DNA from: Iphione sp. A-MEVVRFRX5
Taxonomy: Eukaryota
Assembly (NCBI GenBank): GCA_976226885.1
Contig: OZ320313.1
Location: 83,514,001-83,578,000, forward strand
Length of the DNA: 64,000 nucleotides
Direction: 5' to 3'
The notes under the pieces: model-generated
The model's database searches: none
Told to the model about the DNA's origin: nothing
Seen by the model: only the letters and a program-made list of their open reading frames with translations
Made by a program: the position numbers and the translations under genes
Shown: piece by piece, positions 3,091 through 60,660 of the stretch
Layout of the letters: each line of letters starts with the position of its first letter
Numbering within the stretch: the stretch's first letter is position 1

Positions 3091-11132
<8,042 letters not shown>

Positions 11133-11336
11133 GATTGGCTAAAGCTGTGCCAAATGGAGTCATTGTCAGTATACATGTATTTACTGTTACAAAGTCACTG
11201 TATCATGAATATTATCGTTATTTGTGAATGGTATAGACCATACAAGATACAAGTGCATACCAAGAAAATAAATATATGCTATGAAGGAGGAAACCATGAA
11301 ATTACAAGCAAGCAAAACAAAATACAGTGGAGTCTT

Positions 11337-11465
11337 TATTTGCGACCACATCGATTTCCGACCATTCTTGCTATTACGACCAGTACAGCCTGGTACAAAA
11401 GTTTGGATTTCTGTACTTAAAAATAATCTATTTACGACCAAATTTCTCATTACGACCAGTTCAGG
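11337..11465. mobile_element. Fragment of the same MITE family as 10663-10827
   Basis: tatttgcgaccacatcgatttcc matches the reverse complement of 10796-10821. Repeated ttacgacca motifs. Confidence 0.5.
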
Positions 11466-12959
11466 TTGCTCCCAAGGGGTGGTCACAAACAGAGTCTCCA
11501 CTGTACATGTCACTGAACTGGTGGGACAAGTCATACAGCATATGCAGGAATACAAATATTTGACTAAGCTTGCTTTGACAGATGGAATTATTGTATTTAT
11601 TCCTTAGTTTCTTGTTTTCCGATATACAGCTTTTGATATAGTGATTAATTGATATAATCAATATAAAGCAATAGATAGTAAAGGATAAAGAAATCCTAGC
11701 AAGGTAGTCAATGTATGTGTATCAGTAGCAGCAACACTTTAAACCAAGGGACATACATACTATCTTATTATCATGTCATCACATACATGTAAGTAATCAT
11801 AGTTATTGGAAAAGTTTACAGCTTACAATGATGTATCAACCAGTGGAAATGAATAAATGATTTTTTTTTATTTAAAGTCAGTCTGACCTCCACTGATGTT
11901 AACACAAGTATTATGTTAGTCTTCCATTTTGACTGGATGAGATAAGTAAAATGACATTTTTTTAAATTCAAAATTGCAGTTTGTAAAACTTTCAGTAGAT
12001 AGACCATTTAATTTTTCAAATGCATAAATGAGTCTAAACGTTAAATCACATGTCAGAACTGCGATCATCTTTTATATTTCATGATGGGTGTATGGATTAA
12101 ACAACTCAGGCCTGGAGCTGGAACTGTCATAGATCTCATCTTTTGTGATTTGATCTACTATACACATCACTCAATGCTATGGCTAACTGCTTAGACTATG
12201 CACTGGCAGAATATTCTTCAAGTCGGCATGACGTCACAGTGGCTGATAAGCCTGGTACCCTTAGTCAAATGTGGGTCAGTCTGCCTGGAGTGGAGGTGAA
12301 AGGGAGTGTGTTTCTCTCTTTGAGCCATTGTACTGTTTTGTATCATAATAATAATTTGACATTGACATTAATGCTAACTCTGACATTATGTTTGAGGCAC
12401 ATGTAGAACTACCTTAAGATAAAGTGAAAAAGTCAAAATTATCAGTGGTTTGTTTTTACTAGGCTTTAGAGTTCACATTAGAATATGCAGAAACTCCCAG
12501 ATTATCACCCACTTTTCACCTCTGTAGTGTTTTTGTTAAATTTGAAATTATAGCAGAGGATTTTTATCTAAACACTAATGTCATCCTTTAGATTAATACT
12601 AAACCTATACATTTATCACAATGAAACTCCATGACACCTTTGAAGTCCTTATCAAATTGGGTTTGACAACTCTTTGTTTATACCTTGCTTGCAAAAAGTG
12701 CCCGGATTGCCGACTCCAAGAATATGTAAGAATGAATATATTGAACAGAAATATTCATTACACTGAAGAATCAAATATAACCAAATATCAGGTCTGAGTA
12801 CAGTTTAAGTAGGTTTGCTTGGGCCTCTAGCCTTAATCAGCTTTGGTAAGCTGATCCTAACCCTCATCACGCACTTAAATAGGGACACAAATGGTGAAGT
12901 TGTTAATTATGGTAAGCTGAGATCAAGGCCTAATTTACATACGCATGTTCTCACAGCCG

Positions 12960-13204
12960 TGTCACCATGTTGTTACAGTGATTTTTGGTAACAACAGGAC
13001 CGCTTCCACGTGGCTGTGCATGGCTATGTGGCAATGGCCATCTGAGTCACTGTGTTTTCTTTTTGGAATATGTCCCAATTTTCCTGACTGTGCCACTGTG
13101 TTGTTACCATGGTTTTTGGAGACTAATGGCAACACCTGGACTGCTTTTATATAGCTCCATGCTTCACAGTGAAAACACAATGACATAGTAACAACATGGT
13201 GACA
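12960..13204. mobile_element. Fold-back/MITE-like element
   Basis: Perfect 17-bp inverted repeat tgtcaccatgttgttac (12960-12976) / gtaacaacatggtgaca (13188-13204), plus imperfect internal inverted repeats. Confidence 0.5.
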
Positions 13205-13936
13205 TACACAATGGTGCCCAAACACAGCCATACTGACTTATGTATTTGGAAGTCGGGCCTTAGGAAGCAGTGTCATGTCTGATGTTGACCAATGCCTTGA
13301 TTACACTACCTATATAAAACATTGCCTGAAAGTAGGTCCGGTCATGGGGCTGTCATCTTATAGTGATGTGACTTCACAGAAATACAGTATTTTACATACT
13401 GATTGAGCCATATGGATATTCTAGGCAAAACAGAGATGATTATCCATTATTTGTTAATGTAGACGATGTATTTAAAAAACCAAATGACACATATGGCCCC
13501 ACTTCATTCACACTGAATTGTATTACTACACTATGTATGTAGTATCGCTACACCTGTGTCCAGAATTGCCTCTGTGCTCCTTCAGAAACAAGGGTTGTAA
13601 ACTTGAGAGACTTTGGTCAGCCCCTGTATGTCCAGTCAAGCAGAACCAAGGGTTGTAAAATGTAATCCCTACTCCGGAGCAATGAGTGTGCATCCTCTTT
13701 CTCCTCCACTCCTGCTCCAGCCAGATGCCAGAGCTAGGGCCATCCTTCTCTTGCAACTACTACCCCTACAACCCTGTCGATTTGAGTTGATACAGGTGGG
13801 CGGGATGAAACCAAATTACTCAGCATCCAACTAGTCTCTTTGAATAAACCCTACACATCCCTGGACCTCTCTGCCGTTGATGCCACCACCTGCCAATAAC
13901 CAAGCATTAATTTGGTTGAAAAATGGTCAGTGTCAG

Positions 13937-13940
<4 letters not shown>

Positions 13941-14010
<70 letters not shown>
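13941..14010. repeat. (GA)n microsatellite, about 35 units
   Basis: Direct reading. Confidence 0.97.
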
Positions 14011-14013
<3 letters not shown>

Positions 14014-14379
14014 TGTGTGTTCAGCCTTTACCTCCCTGCTGGTCGATGGGCAGCTTGGTGGGGAAAGAGTGTATGTGCACGTGCACAGACTAGTCTGTAC
14101 ATTGACCTCCCTCTCCCCAATCTCTACCCCTTCCGCCTTCCCTCAACCATACACACTGTAATCAATTAGTGCAGGTGCCAAAGGCATAAATTTGTGTTAG
14201 CAAAAACTGACCAAAGGTCATTAGATACCTTGCAAAATGCATTAGAGGTATAAACAAATGTGTTTTCAAAAAGAATATTGATATGATATGTTTTAAACTC
14301 ACACACAAATCCTTTTGGTATGCGCTAAGAAGTACAGCCTTGACCATTATAATTTATTCATGTTGGAACACACAAGGGT

Positions 14380-14925
14380 AGTAAAATGGCAAGGTAGGAT
14401 GGAAATTGTGTTACAGACAACACATTTGGTATTTCCCAGAGACATGGAATAACCTGGAGTCAGGAGCAAATAAGATGAGGGTATGGGGTCAGGGAGGCCC
14501 AGGGACAAATTGCATGGCCATGGGTGGTGGCAGCCAAGAAGGAGGCCTGTAAGCAAGTTGCGTGGGTGTGGTCGGCAGTGGAAGTGATGTTATTTAACAA
14601 GCACCTGGCACCTTCTCCAGGCATGCAGCTGATTGATCAATCCAGGACCTGTGTATGGTTTTCCATCAGGTTCCCCTAGTTTGCACAACCTAACCCTTCA
14701 TCTCTTTGATCCCCTGGCCATCACCACGCACATCTGGGAAAGCGAGCAATAACCGATCCTTCATCTCCCTGGATCCATCTGGTTGCTGCCACCCCCAAGC
14801 AGCACAAGTAAGTACTAACCAACTGTTCATATCCCCAGGCCTCCCTGCCCCTGCCGCCGCCACTGATGGCCATGAAAGTTTGCACCCATGTGACTCGACC
14901 AGGTACCACCTGCATGACTAAAACC
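14380..14925 (-). mobile_element. Highly decayed Ngaro/DIRS-like RT-RNase H relic
   Basis: Frame-shifted minus-strand fragments (QVVPGR, LVLTCAAWGWQ, GPGLINQLHAWRR) weakly resemble the RT thumb and RNase H motifs (vV.pGR; EL...WG; HipG..N..AD.LSR). Confidence 0.3.
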
Positions 14926-14927
14926 TC

Positions 14928-14988
14928 AACAAGAGTGTGGACCTGTAAGGTCTATTGTCCCCTGCCATCAAGAGATGGGGGAGAGAGG

Positions 14989-15039
<51 letters not shown>

Positions 15040-15614
15040 TGAGTGTGTGTGTGTGTGTGTATGGTATCTCTCTCTCTTTTCAACCATCTTGATTGGCAGC
15101 TAGTTTGGGGATGGTTGGCTAAGATTTTTAGTCCTTCAGGTTTACAACTCTCGGTTCTGCGTGACTGAGCACAACCCCTGTTCTGCTTCACTGAGCACCA
15201 GACTGCTACAAACCCTTGGTTCTGCATGACTGAGCACAGCACCCTCGGTTCTGCCTCAATGAGTGCCAGACTACTACAAGCTGATACTGATCAAAGGGAG
15301 ATGTTGGTGAGTGTGTATGTGTGCATGTATGTGCACTGTCAGACCTAAGAACCCCTAAACCAGGTATGTATGTTTGTAGGTGTGTTAGCAAAAGAGTAAA
15401 ATTGGCATAATTTCACCTTCAAAATACTTGAATTACTATCAAAATTACCTAGTGCCATGGGGCAATATACCGGTATACCAATATCATACATTAAAATCAG
15501 TTCTTTTCAGTGAAGGATTTGAGACTTATAAGACCCACAAGAGTGTGACAGATGGTCAGGACACCAGCCAGCAGCATTCCTAATGTCCCCCCTCTATGAG
15601 GTGGGAACAATAAA
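14928..15614 (+). mobile_element. HINE/Helentron-like non-autonomous repeat, family A copy 1
   Basis: Starts aacaagagtgtggacct...tattgtcccc. Internal (GA)n/(GT)n and about 27-30-bp tandem units. Shared core tgtatgtttgtaggtgtgttagcaaaagag...cttataagacccacaagagtgtgacag. Ends in a gtcccc...ggg hairpin. Homologous to 15925-16732 and 54078-55037. Confidence 0.7.
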
Positions 15615-15924
15615 GGGATACTAGTGTCCTTGTACCCTTAACCATTTTCAGCTCCAAAAGCATGGTCAGTCTACCAACACTTGACGTCAAGATCGCAGGT
15701 TGAGACGGGGAGTCTTGGTAGACTGACCATGCTCTCACAATCATACTAAAAGTGTGTTCTAATATAGCTTATAATCATAACAAGATGAAATTATCTCTTA
15801 CTTTCCAATGAACTGAATCAAATCTTCATAGTTTTTAAGGAGAGCGTCATGTTCACCCAAACAGGCAGTGAACAAAGGTTCTTGAAGCTGATCGGATGAG
15901 AGAAGTCACATGATTTCTAGTTGT

Positions 15925-16732
15925 AACAAGAGTGTGGACCTGTGAGGTCTATTGTCCCCCGCCATCAACTACCCAGAGAGGATGGGGGGGGGGGAGACAG
16001 AGAGAGAGAGAGATATATATATATACAAGCTGATACTGGTAGAAGGCTGCTACAAGCTGATACTGGTAGAAGGAAGATATTGGTGAGTGTGTATGTGTAC
16101 ATGTATGTACATTATCAGACCTAGGAACCCATAAACCAGGTATGTATGTTTGTAGGTGTGTTAGGAAAAGAGTAAAATTGGCATAATTTCACCTTCAAAA
16201 TACTCGAATTACTATCAAAATTGCCCAGTGCCATGGGGCCATATATATTTAGGCAAAAAAAAATAGGTGTGTTGTTTCTGGTAATGACCACCCAAAAACC
16301 TAGGTAAAGAGGGGGGGTATCTTTTTTTTTCAAATTTTCTTTCCACTTTCTTCCTCTGGTTTTTTGATAATAATAAAGATAATATGAAGAATTTTGACCA
16401 ATTTGCAGTTTTTGCTGAATTTCCATGGATTTTATTGCTTTTCTACTGAATTTACAAAAAACATGTACTGTGAAAACATGTATCTAAAGAAATTCAGCCT
16501 TGGAAACTCTTCAGGGACAAAAAATTTTTAGGTAGGGTGAGGTTTTACTAGGTGGGGGGGGGAGGGTTACCAGAAACACACCTATTTTTTTGGCCTAATA
16601 TTATATATTAAAATCAGTTTTTTGAGTGAAGGGTTTGAGACTTATAAGACCCACAAGAGTGTGACAGATGGTCGGGACACCAGCCAGCAGCATTCCTAAT
16701 GTCCCCCCCTCTATGAGGCAGGGGATAAAAAA
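15925..16732 (+). mobile_element. HINE-like family A copy 2, itself interrupted by a MITE
   Basis: Same 5' and 3' boxes as copy 1. Internal 26-bp tandem gctacaagctgatactggtagaag. Confidence 0.7.
16250..16597. mobile_element. MITE family C with TA-flanked terminal inverted repeats
   Basis: ta|ggcaaaaaaaataggtgtg..tttctggtaa ... ttaccagaaacacacctatttttttggcc|ta. Absent at the equivalent site in family A copies 1 and 3. Second copy at 37436-37794. Confidence 0.8.
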
Positions 16733-18179
16733 TCACAGAATGCACACAAGAAAGCAGTAAAACTATGAAGATTGAAGATATTTTAACAAGAAATAATGCA
16801 TATACTGTATGTAATAATTTTTTATAGTTCAGTCACCTTATTTTGATGTATATAATATCCCATTTCTGTCAAAATTCACTGTAAAACTCCACCATTTTGT
16901 TTACTACAACTTCGAATTTTCAACAATGTAGAGTATCAGCCAATATAAATCAGGATCAAATATTAACCAATATTTTCTCTTCTTGCACATTTCACCTATG
17001 CTTTGGGTCGTGTCAGACCAATGCACTCCTTAGGTGATGTTAAAAGATAGGACATGCACCCCCAGCCATATTAAAACACTACACCAAAAGACTGCACCTG
17101 AGAGGTCTTCGTGACCACCACTAGAGACACTATACCAAAGATTGACGCTACTCACTGGGTCTCAACCCCAAATAAGGCCCCCAAACAGGTATAGAGTCGG
17201 TGTTGCAGGCAAGGGTAAAGCACCCCATCCTGAACAGAAGGCAGAATTGGTCATCATCTTCCTTACCATTTGCACCCATAATGGTCTTCTCACCCTCTGC
17301 ATGTCATGTTCATCACAATGTAATAACTGTACATCGAAATAGAGCAGAGAATGTCACATACCAAACTGAAGTACAGAGCATCACGTGTCCTGCTCGTGTA
17401 GACTGTCCTAGTGACTGGTGTACATGTAGTGGTACATCTTTTGAGGCTGAAACCTTTGTTCTAACACTTGTGTCATGATGTTACCTATAGAGCACAGTAG
17501 ATTGAAGCAGGACTTGGGTCTGGAGACTCATGCCAGGTCATATTGTGTTGTATTATTTTAACTTAAGAAATACTATGAATTCCATTTGCAGTTATTTTTC
17601 TCATCAGAACAGCAGTTAAGTGCAATATCTGGTTTGGGTATGTCAGGTTACTTCTGGTATAAAGGATCCCGGCCAAGTTCAACGGACCAGACCCCACCCG
17701 TTATCTTGTTTAAGAGACGAGTTCTTCTTGGGCGAGAAGCCCCCCACACCCCACATTCCTTATAATCTCAACTTATTGTCGGGGGAGACCCCCAACATCC
17801 CGCTTCAGATGGTCATTTTCAGCAGGGGTCTGCTATACTAGAAACTACCCGGTTTGCCTAATTAACATCATCACCCTCGGGTCTGCGGCCCTCAGGTTCA
17901 GGCATTACTCAGACAGACCAAAACCAGATGTCACACTTAACCGCTTTGATGGGGGGGGGGGGGGGGTGTTGAATCACTCCAACAAGAGGCTACAGAGAAA
18001 TCTATACAAGTTACTGGAGTACTGTCGAATACTATTGGGTCCTGTCGAATAGTGGATGCCAATTACTACCTACCAGCGCAAGTGGCTTGATACCAGGTGA
18101 AAAACAAGAAATATATGTACAATAGTAGTAGTAGTACTACTACTAATAATAATAATACTGCTACCTGTATACATCTTAC

Positions 18180-19112
18180 CCGTGTCTTGAGCCCTGTTGA
18201 AAGCTGGCCGTATTAGATCTCGGTGGATAATAAAACACACCAGGGCACTTAAACCAGAAACAGCGACCAATCAATGGCTTTTGCAATTCCGCTATACATA
18301 AATATACGAGAAACTACAATCGCAAGTCATTATAAACAAGGGCGACATAACAGAGGTCGAGGAGTGCGAACATGTTCAAACACGAACTACTCAACTTGAT
18401 TTAACGTGCTCAGGACCAATTTCGTTCCGTAACGACCTAATACTGAGAACTAAACCAACATTCTAATGTCGTTCGTCATTAATCTCTATTCGACAAATGC
18501 ATACCTGAATTCGTTCAACTCCTGCACACGATCCAAGTTTTAAGTTTGTTTTGTTGATTGTGGGCGATATTTGAAATGACCGCCAGGCTGCACACTCGAC
18601 GAAAGTTCAATGCTATTTGTCGATTTCGCAAAATACTCATGCATCGTCAGTATCCCGTATGTGGTGCAACAAATAATATGTATATCCTTCAAATGTCAGT
18701 TGATGTATTTTGGAATAAATTCAATCAAAGCATTTATTTACAACCAATTATTAAATGCCGAAATGTGTTACGTCTGAAAATAGTTCGGCGCTTGGAATAA
18801 TTACCGAACCTCTAGCGGAGGGAAATATAGTAAATTTCACACTATTCAACTTATTCTTTAATGTTTATACTTTTGTGTAGATTCATCGATTTTTAGAGCT
18901 GATAATACACTGAGTTTGGTGAATGTTTGAAGATCTACTTTGCTTGTCGGAATACCGTCCCGAGAAGGGAAGTGGTACGGCAGCTGCCCCCAAACAACAT
19001 AGAAGTGGATCTGGCCATTATGAAAGGATAGCCACTAAAACGTGAAAACCTCTGCCAGGACAGTAGACACGTCTTCACAGTGGATGTAATTCAGCGTGCA
19101 GGAGCTGTAGCC
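18180..19112. promoter_or_regulatory. Putative bidirectional promoter and 5' UTR region for CCDC77 and KDM5
   Basis: Visibly CpG-rich relative to the flanking introns. A strong minus-strand donor cgg|gtaaga at 18180/18179 could join the acceptor just upstream of the CCDC77 ATG (about 11138-11144). A plus-strand acceptor-like tttgtgtag lies near 18880. Transcription start sites are not demonstrable from sequence. Confidence 0.5.
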
Positions 19113-48177
<29,065 letters not shown>

Positions 48178-48902: not shown

Positions 48903-50099
48903 GCATTCGATTGTGTCTTCTATCAACTAGCCTTACCTGCTTTTCTTTTCCGTGCACCTAAAACTGGAAGCACCTTGTGTGGAGCAGGGAATAAAGGACT
49001 AGATGTCTCCACAGTACGTGTTATCGATACAGAAATTGATGATGCTGAAGGGCCGTACAGGTGGTGCCATTTGGGGAACATCAATACTAGTGTGTCGCAG
49101 GGTAGACGACGCCGCCGATTTTCTAGCATTCTTGCCTCTCCACTGGATCTCCTGGCGGTATTTCCTGTTCTTCCTGATACCTCTAGTATCGTGGACGGTT
49201 TCTGTTCAAATATCCATGGTGTCTGAGGTAATCTCTTCCATTGACTCAAGGTTTAGAGGCAGTTGCCATCAGCAATCCGAGAAATGCCACCGGACCTTGG
49301 GTTGCAGCTCAACTGGGTGCATGAATGAACCAGTGTTGGTAGCCTTTACCCAACAGGTAGAAAAGTCACATAAAAACACCCCCAAAAATAGGGAACTAAG
49401 AATGACATCCGAATGAAAATTTAAGGAATACTTGCATTTTGAAAGATACCAAGTTATACCAAAAAGCTGCAAGGCTGTAAGTAGCTTTTTATATCATTAA
49501 GTACAATAAAGAGCTCTTGATTTTTGGAGTTGCAATAACAGTTGGCCATAGAACTGAAATCCAGTATCCTAGCTTGTTTCCTTGTTCTGACTACTAAAAT
49601 ATAACTGGATTAACATTTTTAGGTAGAGTTTGCCTTCTTTCACCAAACGCTGCACAGTGGAGAACCAGTTGCAGAGCATGTCACGGGTGACCAAAAAGGG
49701 AAAGGCCAATATTTCTAAGACCAAGTCACTCATTGCCCTCTGTGGGGAATGTCTCAGACTAAACACTGGGAGAGCAAAAATTGGTCAGTTTCTACCTTGG
49801 TCTTCTATGCAGGTCTTAATCTATTGAAACCAAATGAACTAGAATCACATTTAGGTTTCCTTTACCCAAATATACATCTCAACTATACTACTAATTTTTT
49901 CCGATTACAAATCTAAAAATAAGGGCAAACTCAAAAGTGGATAAACTTGACAAAAAAGGTTGGAAAAATAAGAGTTTTCCCAGAAGAGGTACCAACCTTG
50001 CTGTGAACGAATAAATCGTCTGAAAAAATACATTTGGACCCTTCCAGAAAAATTAGTCATTCACTTGGATTTTGGACCAAGATCATCTATTGCTCCCGA

Positions 50100-50950
50100 G
50101 TGGGAATCTCGTGGGTCCTCTCAGACGGAGCATTAGAGGAAGACGAACAGATGAGGTTCTGTGATGCAATGGACGATAAAAAGTGGTAGGCAAAGATGGT
50201 CATGCAAGGATGGCCTGATAAACGGCGAAATAAAAAAAAAGCCGCTTGAAGCGGACTCGGTGAAACATCCGCGAAAAGTACGCTCGAACTGGCAATCTTC
50301 CGGAGTTCCAGACTCAATGAATGCACGCTCCTTGTGGGATCACATGCGTCAGTTTAGTCGCATTAAGGATAAAGCACAACAGAAAAATTGTCAACACCCC
50401 CGCAATTGCAGTGATTATAAGGTTGACGGAAATCCGGTCGTCGCACAAAACGGAGACTGCGTGGGCAGATGACTCCTTGAAGTAACATCGGACATCATCA
50501 TTCTGGAGGTGATCACACGAGACAAAACTCTCAGGCTCAGGAGGTTCAAGACTGGGGCAGACGTTAATCCCACATTTAAGTGGCTAACGGAGGAGCTGCT
50601 GGTGCCATTTGGCTCTTTGGTGACGAGCTTCGGTAGAATTTAGAGTACGAACAGCGACTTGCCAAGTGTTTGGCGAGGGGCAGGTCAGGAGGAAAATCAC
50701 AACCCCAAAATTGTCACAAACTTTGCAGGCGCAACGATCACAAAAGTTTCAGAGGCAAGTCTGCCAGAGGGAGATATCGAAATCAGACTGCCTACCGCAG
50801 CCCCGTCCAATCTACTGGACAGCTTTGTTTGAATGTTCAGGTGTGCATATCACCACAATTCTTAACAAAGGGTCGCAAATCAGGCTCTCAAACATTATAG
50901 CAGGGACATTATCAAACCTGCAGTTACCCGGCCAAACGCGTAATGATTGA
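50100..50950 (+). mobile_element. Decayed and rearranged Ty3/Gypsy-like relic
   Basis: KMVMQGWPDKRR resembles the GWP motif before Gypsy integrase; RFKTGADVN resembles the protease FklDTGAdvn. The order is non-canonical and the frames are broken. Confidence 0.35.
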
Positions 50951-54077: not shown

Positions 54078-55037
54078 ATAAGAAGAGTGCAGACCTGTGA
54101 GGTCTATTGTCTCCCGCCATCAACTGCCCAGGTGGGTGTGTGTGTGGGGGGGGGGAGAGGGAGAGTGAGTGTGTGGGTGTGCAGGCCTGTAGCCAAGGGG
54201 GTATCGGGGGTATCGTCCGATACCCCCCACAGAAGCCAGAAGTTCCACCTCTCTAGGCCTATGGGTGTATCATGAGAAAGAGGGAGGAAGGGATAGGGGA
54301 GAAAGAGAGAGAGAGAGAGAGAGAGGGCAGAGAGGGAGACAGACGGACAGACATACAGACAGACAGAGCAGAGAAAGAGAGGATGGAATCCTCTCTAACC
54401 AGGAGTACCAACTCTCTAACCATGCAGGAGTTCCACCTCTCTAGCTAAGAGTTCCACCTCTCTTATTTGAGATACCCCCCACAAGACTTCCTGGCTACGG
54501 GCCTGGTGTGTGGTGTCTTTCTCTCTTTTTACAACCACCTTGATTGGCACCTTGTTTTGGGGTGGTTGGCTGGGCTTGTTCAAGTCTTTCAGGTTTACAA
54601 CCCTCAGTCCTACCTGACTGAGCACACAACCCTTACTTCTGCCTGACTGAGCACACCATCCTCGGTTCTGCCTGACTGAGCACCAGACTGCTACAAGCTG
54701 ATACTGGTATAAGAGATGTATTGGTGAGTGTGTGTGTCTGTACTTGTGTGCATTGTCAGATCTGGGAATCCCTAAACCAGATATATATGTTTGTAGGTGT
54801 ATTAGCAAAAGAGTTAGTTTAATTGGTATAATTTCACCTTTAAAATACTACCAAATTGAATTACTACCAAAATTACCCAGTGCCATAGAGCCATATATAC
54901 AAATATCATATATTTAACCAGTTCTTTTGAGTGAAGGGTTTGAGAGTTATAAGACCCACAAGAGTGTGACAGAAGGTTGGGACACCAGCCAGCAGCATTC
55001 CTAAGGTCCCCCCTCTCTATAACGTGGGGGACAATAA
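54078..55037 (+). mobile_element. HINE-like family A copy 3, containing a nested MITE
   Basis: Same 5' box, core and 3' gtccccc...gggggacaata hairpin as copies 1 and 2. Confidence 0.7.
54182..54505. mobile_element. MITE family D (hAT-like CAGG termini) nested in family A copy 3
   Basis: caggcctgtagccaa ... ctggctacgggcctg (13/15 complementary). Related ends at about 51385-51450 and 51983. No clear target site duplication. Confidence 0.55.
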
Positions 55038-60049: not shown

Positions 60050-60660
60050 AGCAACAATGGGATAAACGGGTAGCGATGACACAAATTTTATTAGTTGTAG
60101 AAACAGCACATTGAGCTGTCAGAGCCACATGCCAAAACAATGTCATTATGACGTTCACAACAAAACGTCTCTATGATACGATTGGTCTATTGCACAGTTC
60201 GTTGACTACTTCCTACAACCATTGGTTCCATCCCTCGAATCATTTTAGAGACACCAGCCACTTTCTACGTGTTCTTGATGAGACTGATGCCTTGCCTCCA
60301 CACTCCCTACTACTACCTATGGACAAGTCTTTACACCAACAACCCTAACCAGGAGGGCAACAAAGCTTCTATGCCTGGCACTATCGAGACATCCATGAGA
60401 GGACCCTACTAATCAGCCCATATTTACCTTACTGGATCTGGTGTTAAACTGTTATAATTTTCAGCTTGATAACAAGCAGTACTTACTAATAGGCCGGACT
60501 TTGTTGGGCACAAAGCTTGTATCATCATATGCGACCATTTTCATGGGACACTCTGAGGAAACATATCTTTACATACCGTCTGCAAACTTTGATTTACGAG
60601 TGTTTCATAATTGAAATTTTCCTCATCTGGTCCAATGGGGAGAGTATGGTCTGTGCACGT
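60050..60660 (+). mobile_element. Penelope-like element reverse transcriptase relic
   Basis: Frame-shifted VDYFLQPLVPSL, RDTSHFLRVL, LLLPMD.KSLYTN, LVLNCYNFQLDNKQY, GTKLVSSYATIFMG and IFLIW match the PLE RT motifs in order. The catalytic YIDD is destroyed. Confidence 0.75.

Follow-up and report, generated by a model that had tools for sequence, protein, structure and literature searches.

Conserved divergent arrangement of KDM5 and CCDC77 in Iphione sp. and a candidate shared promoter between them

In the stretch of 64,000 nucleotides analysed here (the window), a gene for the histone demethylase KDM5 on the plus strand and the gene for the centriolar protein CCDC77 on the minus strand lie head to head, with start codons 7,981 bp apart (19113 and 11132). 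This confirms the two ATGs diverging at about 8 kb that were described in an earlier note on this DNA, and the genes have the divergent orientation of a bidirectional promoter pair. The question is whether they are transcribed from one promoter region or are neighbours for another reason. Immediate neighbourhood of unrelated genes in the same orientation rarely persists from corals to birds, and such pairs serve as pointers to shared cis-regulation. Here the partners are a well-studied chromatin eraser and a protein that holds centriole triplets together and affects centriole duplication.

Identity of the two genes

The exon-1 peptide of KDM5 matches the Pfam family JmjN (E=2.5e-17), and downstream exons match, in genomic order, ARID, PHD, JmjC (three exons), KDM5_C-hel (E=1.7e-29), PLU-1 (E=8e-37), PHD and PHD. 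This is the domain order of KDM5/JARID1 proteins (JmjN, ARID, PHD, JmjC, C-terminal helical/zinc-finger region, PLU-1, PHD fingers), with KDM5_C-hel standing for the helical/zinc-finger region. The exons are also colinear by tblastn with KDM5 of Priapulus, amphioxus, coral, and Rhea.

CCDC77 comprises nine coding blocks on the minus strand, from the ATG down to 3091, with an in-frame TAG 9 nt 5' of the ATG. Eight of the exon blocks are colinear and 60-81% identical with CCDC77 of annelids, molluscs, chordates, and cnidarians (tblastn). The closest homolog shares 81% identity over 470 aligned residues and has a similar N-terminus, and the 84-aa exon at 5469-5720 matches proteins that bear the name CCDC77 in their sources. 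Similarity to CCDC77 runs over the whole length and in the same order. For both genes the exons were compared singly rather than as joined spliced models, and on these sequence comparisons the orthology of KDM5 and CCDC77 is solid. For the CCDC77 exons Pfam returned nothing beyond sub-threshold coiled-coil noise; the protein has no Pfam family of its own, and a PDB sequence search with CCDC77 gave no match. A word search with one CCDC77 exon retrieved only unnamed exon-sized open reading frames, and a representative search was used instead. The description of CCDC77 as poorly characterised is out of date, since it is a component of the centriole A-C linker (PMC12290023, PMC11060037). Coordinates of both genes and of the features between them are collected in Table 1.

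Table 1. Features of the KDM5-CCDC77 locus (positions in the window; a slash marks the splice junction)
Feature	Position	Strand	Remarks
KDM5 (JARID1-type H3K4 demethylase) coding region	19113..48174 (end about)	+	ATG to last PHD-finger exon
KDM5 exon 1, coding part (JmjN)	19113..19262	+	terminates at donor CAG/GTGGGT
CpG-undepleted patch	18200..19200 (about)		o/e 0.85-1.60, about 50 CpGs
Candidate non-coding CCDC77 exon 1	18180..18296	-	predicted; 3' end set by donor CGG/GTAAGA at 18180, 5' limit provisional
Candidate CCDC77 intron 1 or intergenic spacer	11145..18179	-	7,035 nt, candidate donor to candidate acceptor
Dispersed non-coding repeats	14928..17078		copies in KDM5 introns 36722-37784 and 54079-55037
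CCDC77 first coding exon	10953..11144	-	candidate acceptor cag/CTTTAGCCAATC, ATG at 11132, donor after 10953
CCDC77 remaining coding region	3091..10952	-	colinear (tblastn) with CCDC77 loci in 11 species
CCDC77 exon blocks (about)	8731-8868, 7303-7446, 6331-6492, 5469-5726	-
CCDC77 exon blocks, continued (about)	4611-4880, 4183-4353, 3554-3763, 3094-3282	-

Conservation of the pair across animals

By tblastn, the two genes are head to head in four other animals, with distances measured between CDS starts: Priapulus caudatus (448 bases), the amphioxus Branchiostoma floridae (4,982 bases), the coral Desmophyllum pertusum (6,649 bases), and the bird Rhea pennata (3,740 bases, with a B4GALNT3-like gene next). 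Counting this genome, five species have the pair, each in 5'-5' orientation and with no called gene in between. The same adjacency in the same orientation is thus found in protostomes, in deuterostomes, and outside the Bilateria. Since a coral and bilaterians share it, it dates at least to the cnidarian-bilaterian ancestor, and on this comparison of sequences KDM5-CCDC77 is an ancient divergent gene pair that has been retained in this annelid-like genome. The earlier note had proposed that the pair is conserved with vertebrates and at least as old as their common ancestor with this invertebrate. The arrangement in Rhea and the human gene order (IQSEC3, SLC6A12, SLC6A13, KDM5A, CCDC77, B4GALNT3; PMC8303811) bear out the first proposal, and the coral, priapulid, amphioxus, and bird loci make the pair older than the second had it. 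Human 12p13.33 resembles Rhea in running from KDM5 through CCDC77 to B4GALNT3 or a B4GALNT3-like gene, the Rhea pair being head to head, and differs from amphioxus and coral, where IQSEC lies just after CCDC77 instead of beyond KDM5A. No homologs of IQSEC, B4GALNT3, or USH1C were found within our window.

The survey of other genomes that the earlier note had suggested gave a mixed picture. Beside the four positive loci, CCDC77 has a different divergent neighbour in Trichoplax (IQSEC) and in the teleost Betta (an USH1C-like gene), and six loci were uninformative. In Amia, Rhincodon, and S. purpuratus the 10-kb flank fell short of bridging the first introns or the models were 5'-truncated. In Mya, Watersipora, and an intronless locus no KDM5 was found within 10 kb of CCDC77, which, given the 8-kb spacing here, is not proof of loss.

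The pair can therefore be broken, as the replacements in Trichoplax and Betta indicate, and its adjacency might be no more than an ancestral order that decays slowly in conservative genomes, free of selective or regulatory coupling. Amphioxus, coral, priapulid, and bird, which keep the pair, all have conservative genomes, and that IQSEC has remained close by in coral, amphioxus, and human points to a block that is stable overall. Against this stands the 5'-5' adjacency in five lineages (Cnidaria, Ecdysozoa, Lophotrochozoa, Cephalochordata, and Vertebrata), a signature of cis-regulatory constraint according to Irimia et al. 2012 (PMC3514665), and we regard simple slow decay as rather unlikely.

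The CpG landscape and a candidate first exon of CCDC77

Between the two start codons there is a single promoter-like CpG patch, directly upstream of KDM5 exon 1. Each 200-bp window in 18200-19199 has a CpG o/e of 0.85-1.60, compared with 0.47 for the whole window. The G+C content of the patch is only 0.34-0.54, so that it is CpG-undepleted but not G+C-rich; the CpG-rich segment of about 18200-19260 in the earlier note stands in the first sense and not in the second. The patch of about 1 kb is presumably unmethylated in the germline, and it extends less sharply into the KDM5 5' introns, to about 22.5 kb. On the plus strand upstream of the KDM5 ATG there are an AATAAA at 18714 and an ATTAAA at 18750, and from the position of these hexamers the 5'UTR and start site of KDM5 probably lie 3' of them and upstream of 19113.

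The DNA on the CCDC77 side of the patch is very different. Nowhere in the window is CpG more depleted than in the segment between the candidate donor and the candidate acceptor. Mean o/e is 0.21 at 11.5-18.0 kb, compared with 0.35 in KDM5 introns (Mann-Whitney p=0.007), 0.38 in CCDC77 introns (p=0.006), and 0.52 in the flanks (p=9e-6), and this interval therefore resembles a transcribed, methylated gene body and is unlike flanking DNA. The depletion could alternatively come from methylated repeats. At least 2.2 kb of the interval consists of repeats; those at 14928-17078 include internal duplicates of 91-94% identity. A search of 10000-20500 against Rfam gave a sole, sub-threshold hit inside a GA microsatellite, which was discarded. 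On this CpG landscape, the favoured reading is that CCDC77 starts at the KDM5-side patch and has a 7-kb intron in its 5'UTR.

If so, transcription of KDM5 would most likely start in the proximal part of the 18200-19200 patch and that of CCDC77 at its distal edge, where a short non-coding exon would end at 18180. Splicing would join it, over 7.0 kb of intron with repeats, to a site 12 nt 5' of the ATG. Divergent transcription of both genes would then come from a single promoter region under 1 kb in width. We take the human KDM5A and CCDC77 genes at 12p13.33 to be divergent with nearly overlapping start sites. The strong donor at 18180 that the earlier note reported is indeed in the minus-strand sequence, as CGG/GTAAGA, although by itself it is weak evidence because a chance GTRAG donor occurs about every 500 nt. 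It is the one strong donor on the minus strand out of the patch, with no AATAAA or ATTAAA over 1.3 kb. Between 18296 and 18180 the candidate exon is free of ATG; the nearest one further upstream occurs at 18299. In JGI metagenome contigs, exact-pattern scans gave 0 matches both for candidate exon 1 and for the beginning of the ATG exon.

At the other end of the proposed intron, the candidate acceptor 12 nt 5' of the CCDC77 ATG has a branch-point-like TACTGAC upstream and a pyrimidine fraction of only 0.53, at the 52nd percentile of all YAG sites. Good acceptor-like sites are present 7-33 nt 5' of the CCDC77 ATG in Betta, Rhea, and coral (95th-98th percentile) and absent in Priapulus, where the spacing is only 448 bp, a distribution consistent with a 5'UTR intron in every species whose genes lie far apart. 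An out-of-frame ATG lies 31 nt 5' of the CCDC77 ATG and would be removed by the proposed splice. With the CpG landscape in favour of a non-coding first exon and the weak acceptor against it, a shared bidirectional promoter of KDM5 and CCDC77 in this genome appears evenly balanced between true and false, and the start-site positions, the exon-1 splice, and any co-regulation of the two genes are to be read as predictions.

The weak acceptor would fit a conserved pair with two separate promoters, CCDC77 starting within about 30 nt 5' of its ATG at 11132 from a promoter of average CpG content. The 7 kb to KDM5 would then be a spacer swollen by repeats, and something other than a shared core promoter would keep the genes linked, such as distal elements that serve both or regulatory sequences of one that lie within the other. 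Of the five species with the pair, four have CDS starts separated by 3.7-8 kb, the repeats in the interval here are in keeping with such a spacer, and in Rhea the CCDC77 ATG exon carries a CpG island of its own, 2.2 kb away from that of KDM5A, which argues for separate promoters in at least one lineage. In addition, the CCDC77 ATG lies within TCAAAATGGCG in amphioxus, coral, Mya, and Priapulus. This is a YY1-like/Kozak context, typical where starts sit close to the ATG, and its overlap with the ATG in four phyla suggests that the ancestral start was at the ATG exon; our window has a degraded form, CCAATCATGGCA. However, CpG density around the CCDC77 ATG exon (10800-11400) is not enriched, at 2.2 CpG per 100 bp, the window mean, and no TATA box was found. 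Moreover, CpG depletion of the interval exceeds that of introns and sets it far apart from the flanks, and the out-of-frame ATG at -31 would force a CCDC77 5'UTR of less than 31 nt. Separate promoters, together with the spacer and either cause of linkage, are thus a tentative possibility, one that deserves weight without being probable.

The CCDC77 transcript might also start elsewhere in the interval, for instance at another upstream exon or from a promoter supplied by the repeats at 14.9-17.1 kb. Repeats could carry promoters, and other donor-like sites on the minus strand are found at 17294, 17267, and 17156, but the DNA around these sites is strongly depleted in CpG and lacks a promoter-like patch. 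No other observation favours such a start, which we consider quite improbable.

Sequence motifs gave little guidance on start sites. None of the vertebrate-type motifs GC box, NRF1, ETS, E2F, CRE, and full YY1 was found in 17900-19300. The only CCAAT boxes there (18267, 18416, and 18744) were set aside because their spacing is incompatible with either start-site model. Among k-mers common to the KDM5-upstream regions of five species, none rose above shuffled controls.

Comparison with known divergent pairs

Among the conserved ancestral microsyntenic pairs (CAMPs) of metazoans, 5'-5' orientation and small distances between the genes are over-represented (Irimia et al. 2012, PMC3514665). Like them, KDM5 and CCDC77 are unrelated genes that are adjacent 5'-5' across cnidarians, protostomes, and deuterostomes. 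Unlike them, they have CDS starts separated by several kb in most species, and only in Priapulus, with its 448 bp, must the start sites be less than 1 kb apart. The HSPD1/HSPE1 pair, a classical bidirectional promoter whose conservation extends from human as far as unicellular relatives (cited in PMC3514665), likewise consists of divergent genes around one CpG-rich region, but there the two genes are co-expressed from mapped start sites separated by less than 1 kb, whereas a shared promoter of KDM5 and CCDC77 requires the candidate 7-kb 5'UTR intron. KDM5-CCDC77 is a well-documented case of a known class, the conserved divergent microsyntenic pairs.

Whether the pair has been fired from one bidirectional promoter throughout its history, with a non-coding first exon of CCDC77 and a long 5'UTR intron, ending a few nt short of the ATG, kept and KDM5, CCDC77, and IQSEC forming a block of more than 600 million years, is a larger claim that we consider unlikely. 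If true, a chromatin regulator of cell-cycle genes would be transcriptionally coupled to centriole duplication throughout animals. The shared-promoter reading for this genome predicts co-regulation of KDM5 and CCDC77, something that human cells or any of these animals would allow one to test easily. Should the promoters be separate, the locus makes a case for asking what else, for example enhancers inside the neighbouring gene, holds the genes together.

Conserved bidirectional promoters have been used to predict unannotated 5'UTR exons (PMC2688522), and the KDM5-CCDC77 pair is not mentioned in the part of its supplement files covered here. The reasoning is alike, in that bidirectionality of a pair in one species points to a missing non-coding first exon beside the partner in another; that study drew on mammalian alignments and transcript data, and ours on genomic sequence. 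For annotation, the corresponding prediction is a missing non-coding first exon of CCDC77 beside KDM5.

A divergent gene pair conserved from Cnidaria to Vertebrata

The earlier note had proposed that KDM5 (+) and CCDC77 (-) form a divergent pair conserved with vertebrates, and the same 5'-5' adjacency was indeed found from Cnidaria to Vertebrata. We surveyed 12 CCDC77 loci, using CDS ranges as gene ranges and checking each locus by tblastn with exon pieces from the window. With the window included, Cnidaria, Ecdysozoa, Lophotrochozoa, Cephalochordata and Vertebrata all show the adjacency, which is thus at least as old as the cnidarian-bilaterian ancestor. The pair was kept in five of the seven informative lineages, a result at odds with loss of the linkage in most intervening lineages. 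The gene order in Rhea agrees with the human order IQSEC3, SLC6A12, SLC6A13, KDM5A, CCDC77, B4GALNT3 (PMC8303811). KDM5 was not found within 10 kb of CCDC77 in Watersipora (Bryozoa), Mya (Bivalvia) or an intronless CCDC77 locus (L011), which is weak evidence because the spacing in the window is already 8 kb. Amia and Rhincodon (Vertebrata) and S. purpuratus (Echinodermata), with long first introns or 5'-truncated models, fall outside the count.

Divergent neighbours of CCDC77 and distance between CDS starts
Species	Arrangement	Bases between CDS starts
Priapulus caudatus (Priapulida)	KDM5/CCDC77 head-to-head	448
Branchiostoma floridae (Cephalochordata)	KDM5/CCDC77 head-to-head	4,982
Desmophyllum pertusum (Cnidaria, stony coral)	KDM5/CCDC77 head-to-head	6,649
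Rhea pennata (Aves)	KDM5/CCDC77 head-to-head, then B4GALNT3-like gene	3,740
Trichoplax (Placozoa)	IQSEC-type gene as divergent neighbour	941
Betta splendens (Teleostei)	USH1C-like gene as divergent neighbour	1,039

Deeply conserved gene pairs, mostly 5'-5', form a recognised class (Irimia et al. 2012, PMC3514665), of which KDM5-CCDC77 is a further, real and well-supported example. The pair is not mentioned in those supplements on human bidirectional pairs that were checked, and among the papers naming both genes, the 10 of 11 that were listed are, by their titles and abstracts, clinical, GWAS, livestock or computational protein-interaction work, with none of the 10 on synteny or a shared promoter.

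Identity of the two genes

The + strand gene is a complete KDM5/JARID1-type gene. Searches were run separately for each exon, with single exons rather than spliced models as queries. Downstream of the JmjN piece lie, in order, ARID, PHD, JmjC (three exons), KDM5_C-hel (E=1.7e-29), PLU-1 (E=8e-37) and two PHD fingers, and the final exon ends near 48174 (+). Another CpG-undepleted patch (50001-50500, o/e 1.08) is located 2 kb beyond this exon. The ORF piece 60399-60611 shows weak similarity to the shark and coral loci, of the kind that a transposon fragment would give. In the Priapulus locus (L006), the first three KDM5 exons occur twice (480-1608 and 8401-9537) at a separation of about 7.9 kb, and JmjN-ARID-PHD is doubled in the annotated protein; the cause is a tandem duplication or else an artefact of the assembly.

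Features of the KDM5 and CCDC77 genes in the window
Feature	Position	Strand	Description
CCDC77 coding region	ATG 11132 down to 3091	-	Nine coiled-coil coding blocks
Candidate CCDC77 acceptor	YAG 12 nt before CCDC77 ATG	-	Branch-point-like TACTGAC upstream
Candidate CCDC77 exon 1 donor	18180	-	CGG/GTAAGA
KDM5 exon 1 coding piece	19113 (ATG)-19262	+	JmjN, Pfam E=2.5e-17; donor CAG/GTGGGT at 19262

The nine - strand blocks gave no Pfam family match and no solved structure by sequence, and a word search with the 84-aa exon (5469-5720) matched unnamed exon-sized ORFs only. An exhaustive representative search with the same exon returned 158 matches at E<=0.001, among them sequences labelled CCDC77 by their source from Amia, Macrostomum, Monosiga, Priapulus, Watersipora, sea urchin, gar, whale shark, wall lizard (Podarcis), pipefish and koala, and CCDC77 loci in 11 species match eight window exon blocks in colinear order (tblastn). 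The closest CCDC77 (P0339, from a cDNA-sized contig of a Logan assembly) is 81% identical over 470 aligned residues, followed by annelid, mollusc and other lophotrochozoan CCDC77 at 65-72%; in a quick ML tree P0339 nests within the annelids, beside Owenia, Capitella and Ridgeia (SH-aLRT 94). Judged through this nearest homolog, the window probably comes from an annelid. The N-terminus read from ATG 11132 resembles that of P0339 and a TAG lies in frame 9 nt upstream, which identify 11132 as the start codon. The description of CCDC77 as poorly characterised is outdated: the protein makes up the centriole A-C linker together with WDR67 and MIIP, and when it is depleted, triplets lose their cohesion and centriole duplication is impaired (PMC12290023; PMC11060037).

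In the window, the pieces 4924-5040 and 4599-4880 (-) each align with the start of one and the same CCDC77 exon of other species, and in amphioxus this exon start occurs four times in tandem at about 130-bp spacing (L007:33712-34181). In sea urchin, the counterpart of window exon 5469-5744 occurs three times with a 2.7-kb period inside a CCDC77-like model (L005:21084-26612) that lacks the first two coding exons. The L011 copy (10001-11491, on a 362-kb ENA contig) is full-length and intronless, encodes 496 aa with about 71% identity to the window exons and clusters with P0339 among annelids in a quick tree; the adjacent SGT1-like gene is also apparently intronless.

Where CCDC77 transcription may start

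The ATG spacing (7,981 bp), CpG patch and donor that the earlier note described are all present. CpG o/e is 0.85-1.60 in each 200-bp window of 18200-19199 (about 50 CpGs) versus 0.47 for the whole window, and G+C is merely 0.34-0.54. Judged by composition, the patch is undepleted in CpG, as expected of germline-unmethylated DNA, and is not a G+C-rich island. It ends abruptly at 18200 and, on the other side, fades through the KDM5 5' introns to about 22.5 kb. AATAAA (18714) and ATTAAA (18750) on the + strand within the patch suggest that KDM5 starts after 18755.

Whether CCDC77 also starts at this patch is, in our judgement, evenly balanced. Transcription of both genes would then begin there, and a putative non-coding CCDC77 exon 1 would end at 18180 and be spliced to the acceptor 12 nt before ATG 11132. 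Consistent with this, the patch is the only one in the 8 kb, and the CCDC77 ATG exon has window-average CpG density. Beyond the patch on the - strand lies a strong donor, and polyadenylation hexamers are absent for 1.3 kb; the candidate exon is ATG-free from 18296 down to 18180, and the proposed splice removes an out-of-frame ATG 31 nt upstream of the CCDC77 ATG. In Betta, Rhea and coral, the ATG is preceded at 7-33 nt by acceptor-like sites rich in pyrimidines (95th-98th percentile); Priapulus, with 448 bp spacing, has none. Against it, the window acceptor ranks at the 52nd percentile for pyrimidine content among all YAG sites, and chance alone would yield a GTRAG donor roughly once per 500 nt.

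Mean CpG o/e at 11.5-18.0 kb is the lowest in the window (0.21), below the introns of the two genes (0.35 and 0.38; p=0.007 and 0.006) and the flanks (0.52; p=9e-6). This level resembles a methylated gene body, unlike flanking DNA, and favours the patch start, but it may be explained by dispersed repeats, which fill at least 2.2 kb of the interval. The repeat family is non-coding, with copies at 14928-17078, 36722-37784 (KDM5 intron) and 54079-55037 (downstream of KDM5) that are 72-94% identical, some beside GA and GT microsatellites.

A separate CCDC77 start just upstream of 11132 is a possible, less probable alternative, and other start sites take what is left. TCAAAATGGCG, which may represent a YY1-type element, a splice acceptor with Kozak context, or the two combined, holds the CCDC77 ATG in amphioxus, coral, Mya and Priapulus. 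YY1-like/Kozak context of this kind usually accompanies a start site near the ATG. Rhea also has a second CpG island, on its CCDC77 ATG exon. Exact-pattern scans of JGI contigs for the ATG-exon start and candidate exon 1 gave no matches, and promoter motif scans, cross-species shared k-mers and donor scans at other loci added nothing on the start site.

Amphioxus (L007:9979-10006) and coral (L008:9979-10008) share a nearly identical stretch of about 21 nt around the CCDC77 start codon (CCGCCAGATTCAAAATGGCG), with inverted arms CCGCCA/TGGCGG. The window has CCAATCATGGCA in place of TCAAAATGGCG.

IQSEC as a neighbour of the pair

No IQSEC homolog was found within the window. An IQSEC-type gene (Sec7 and IQ_SEC7_PH) directly follows CCDC77 tail-to-tail in amphioxus (L007:43914-48146) and coral (L008:22403-24333), is head-to-head with CCDC77 in Trichoplax (L003:3080-9059), and human IQSEC3 lies three genes from KDM5A (PMC8303811), suggesting that KDM5-CCDC77-IQSEC is an ancient three-gene block.
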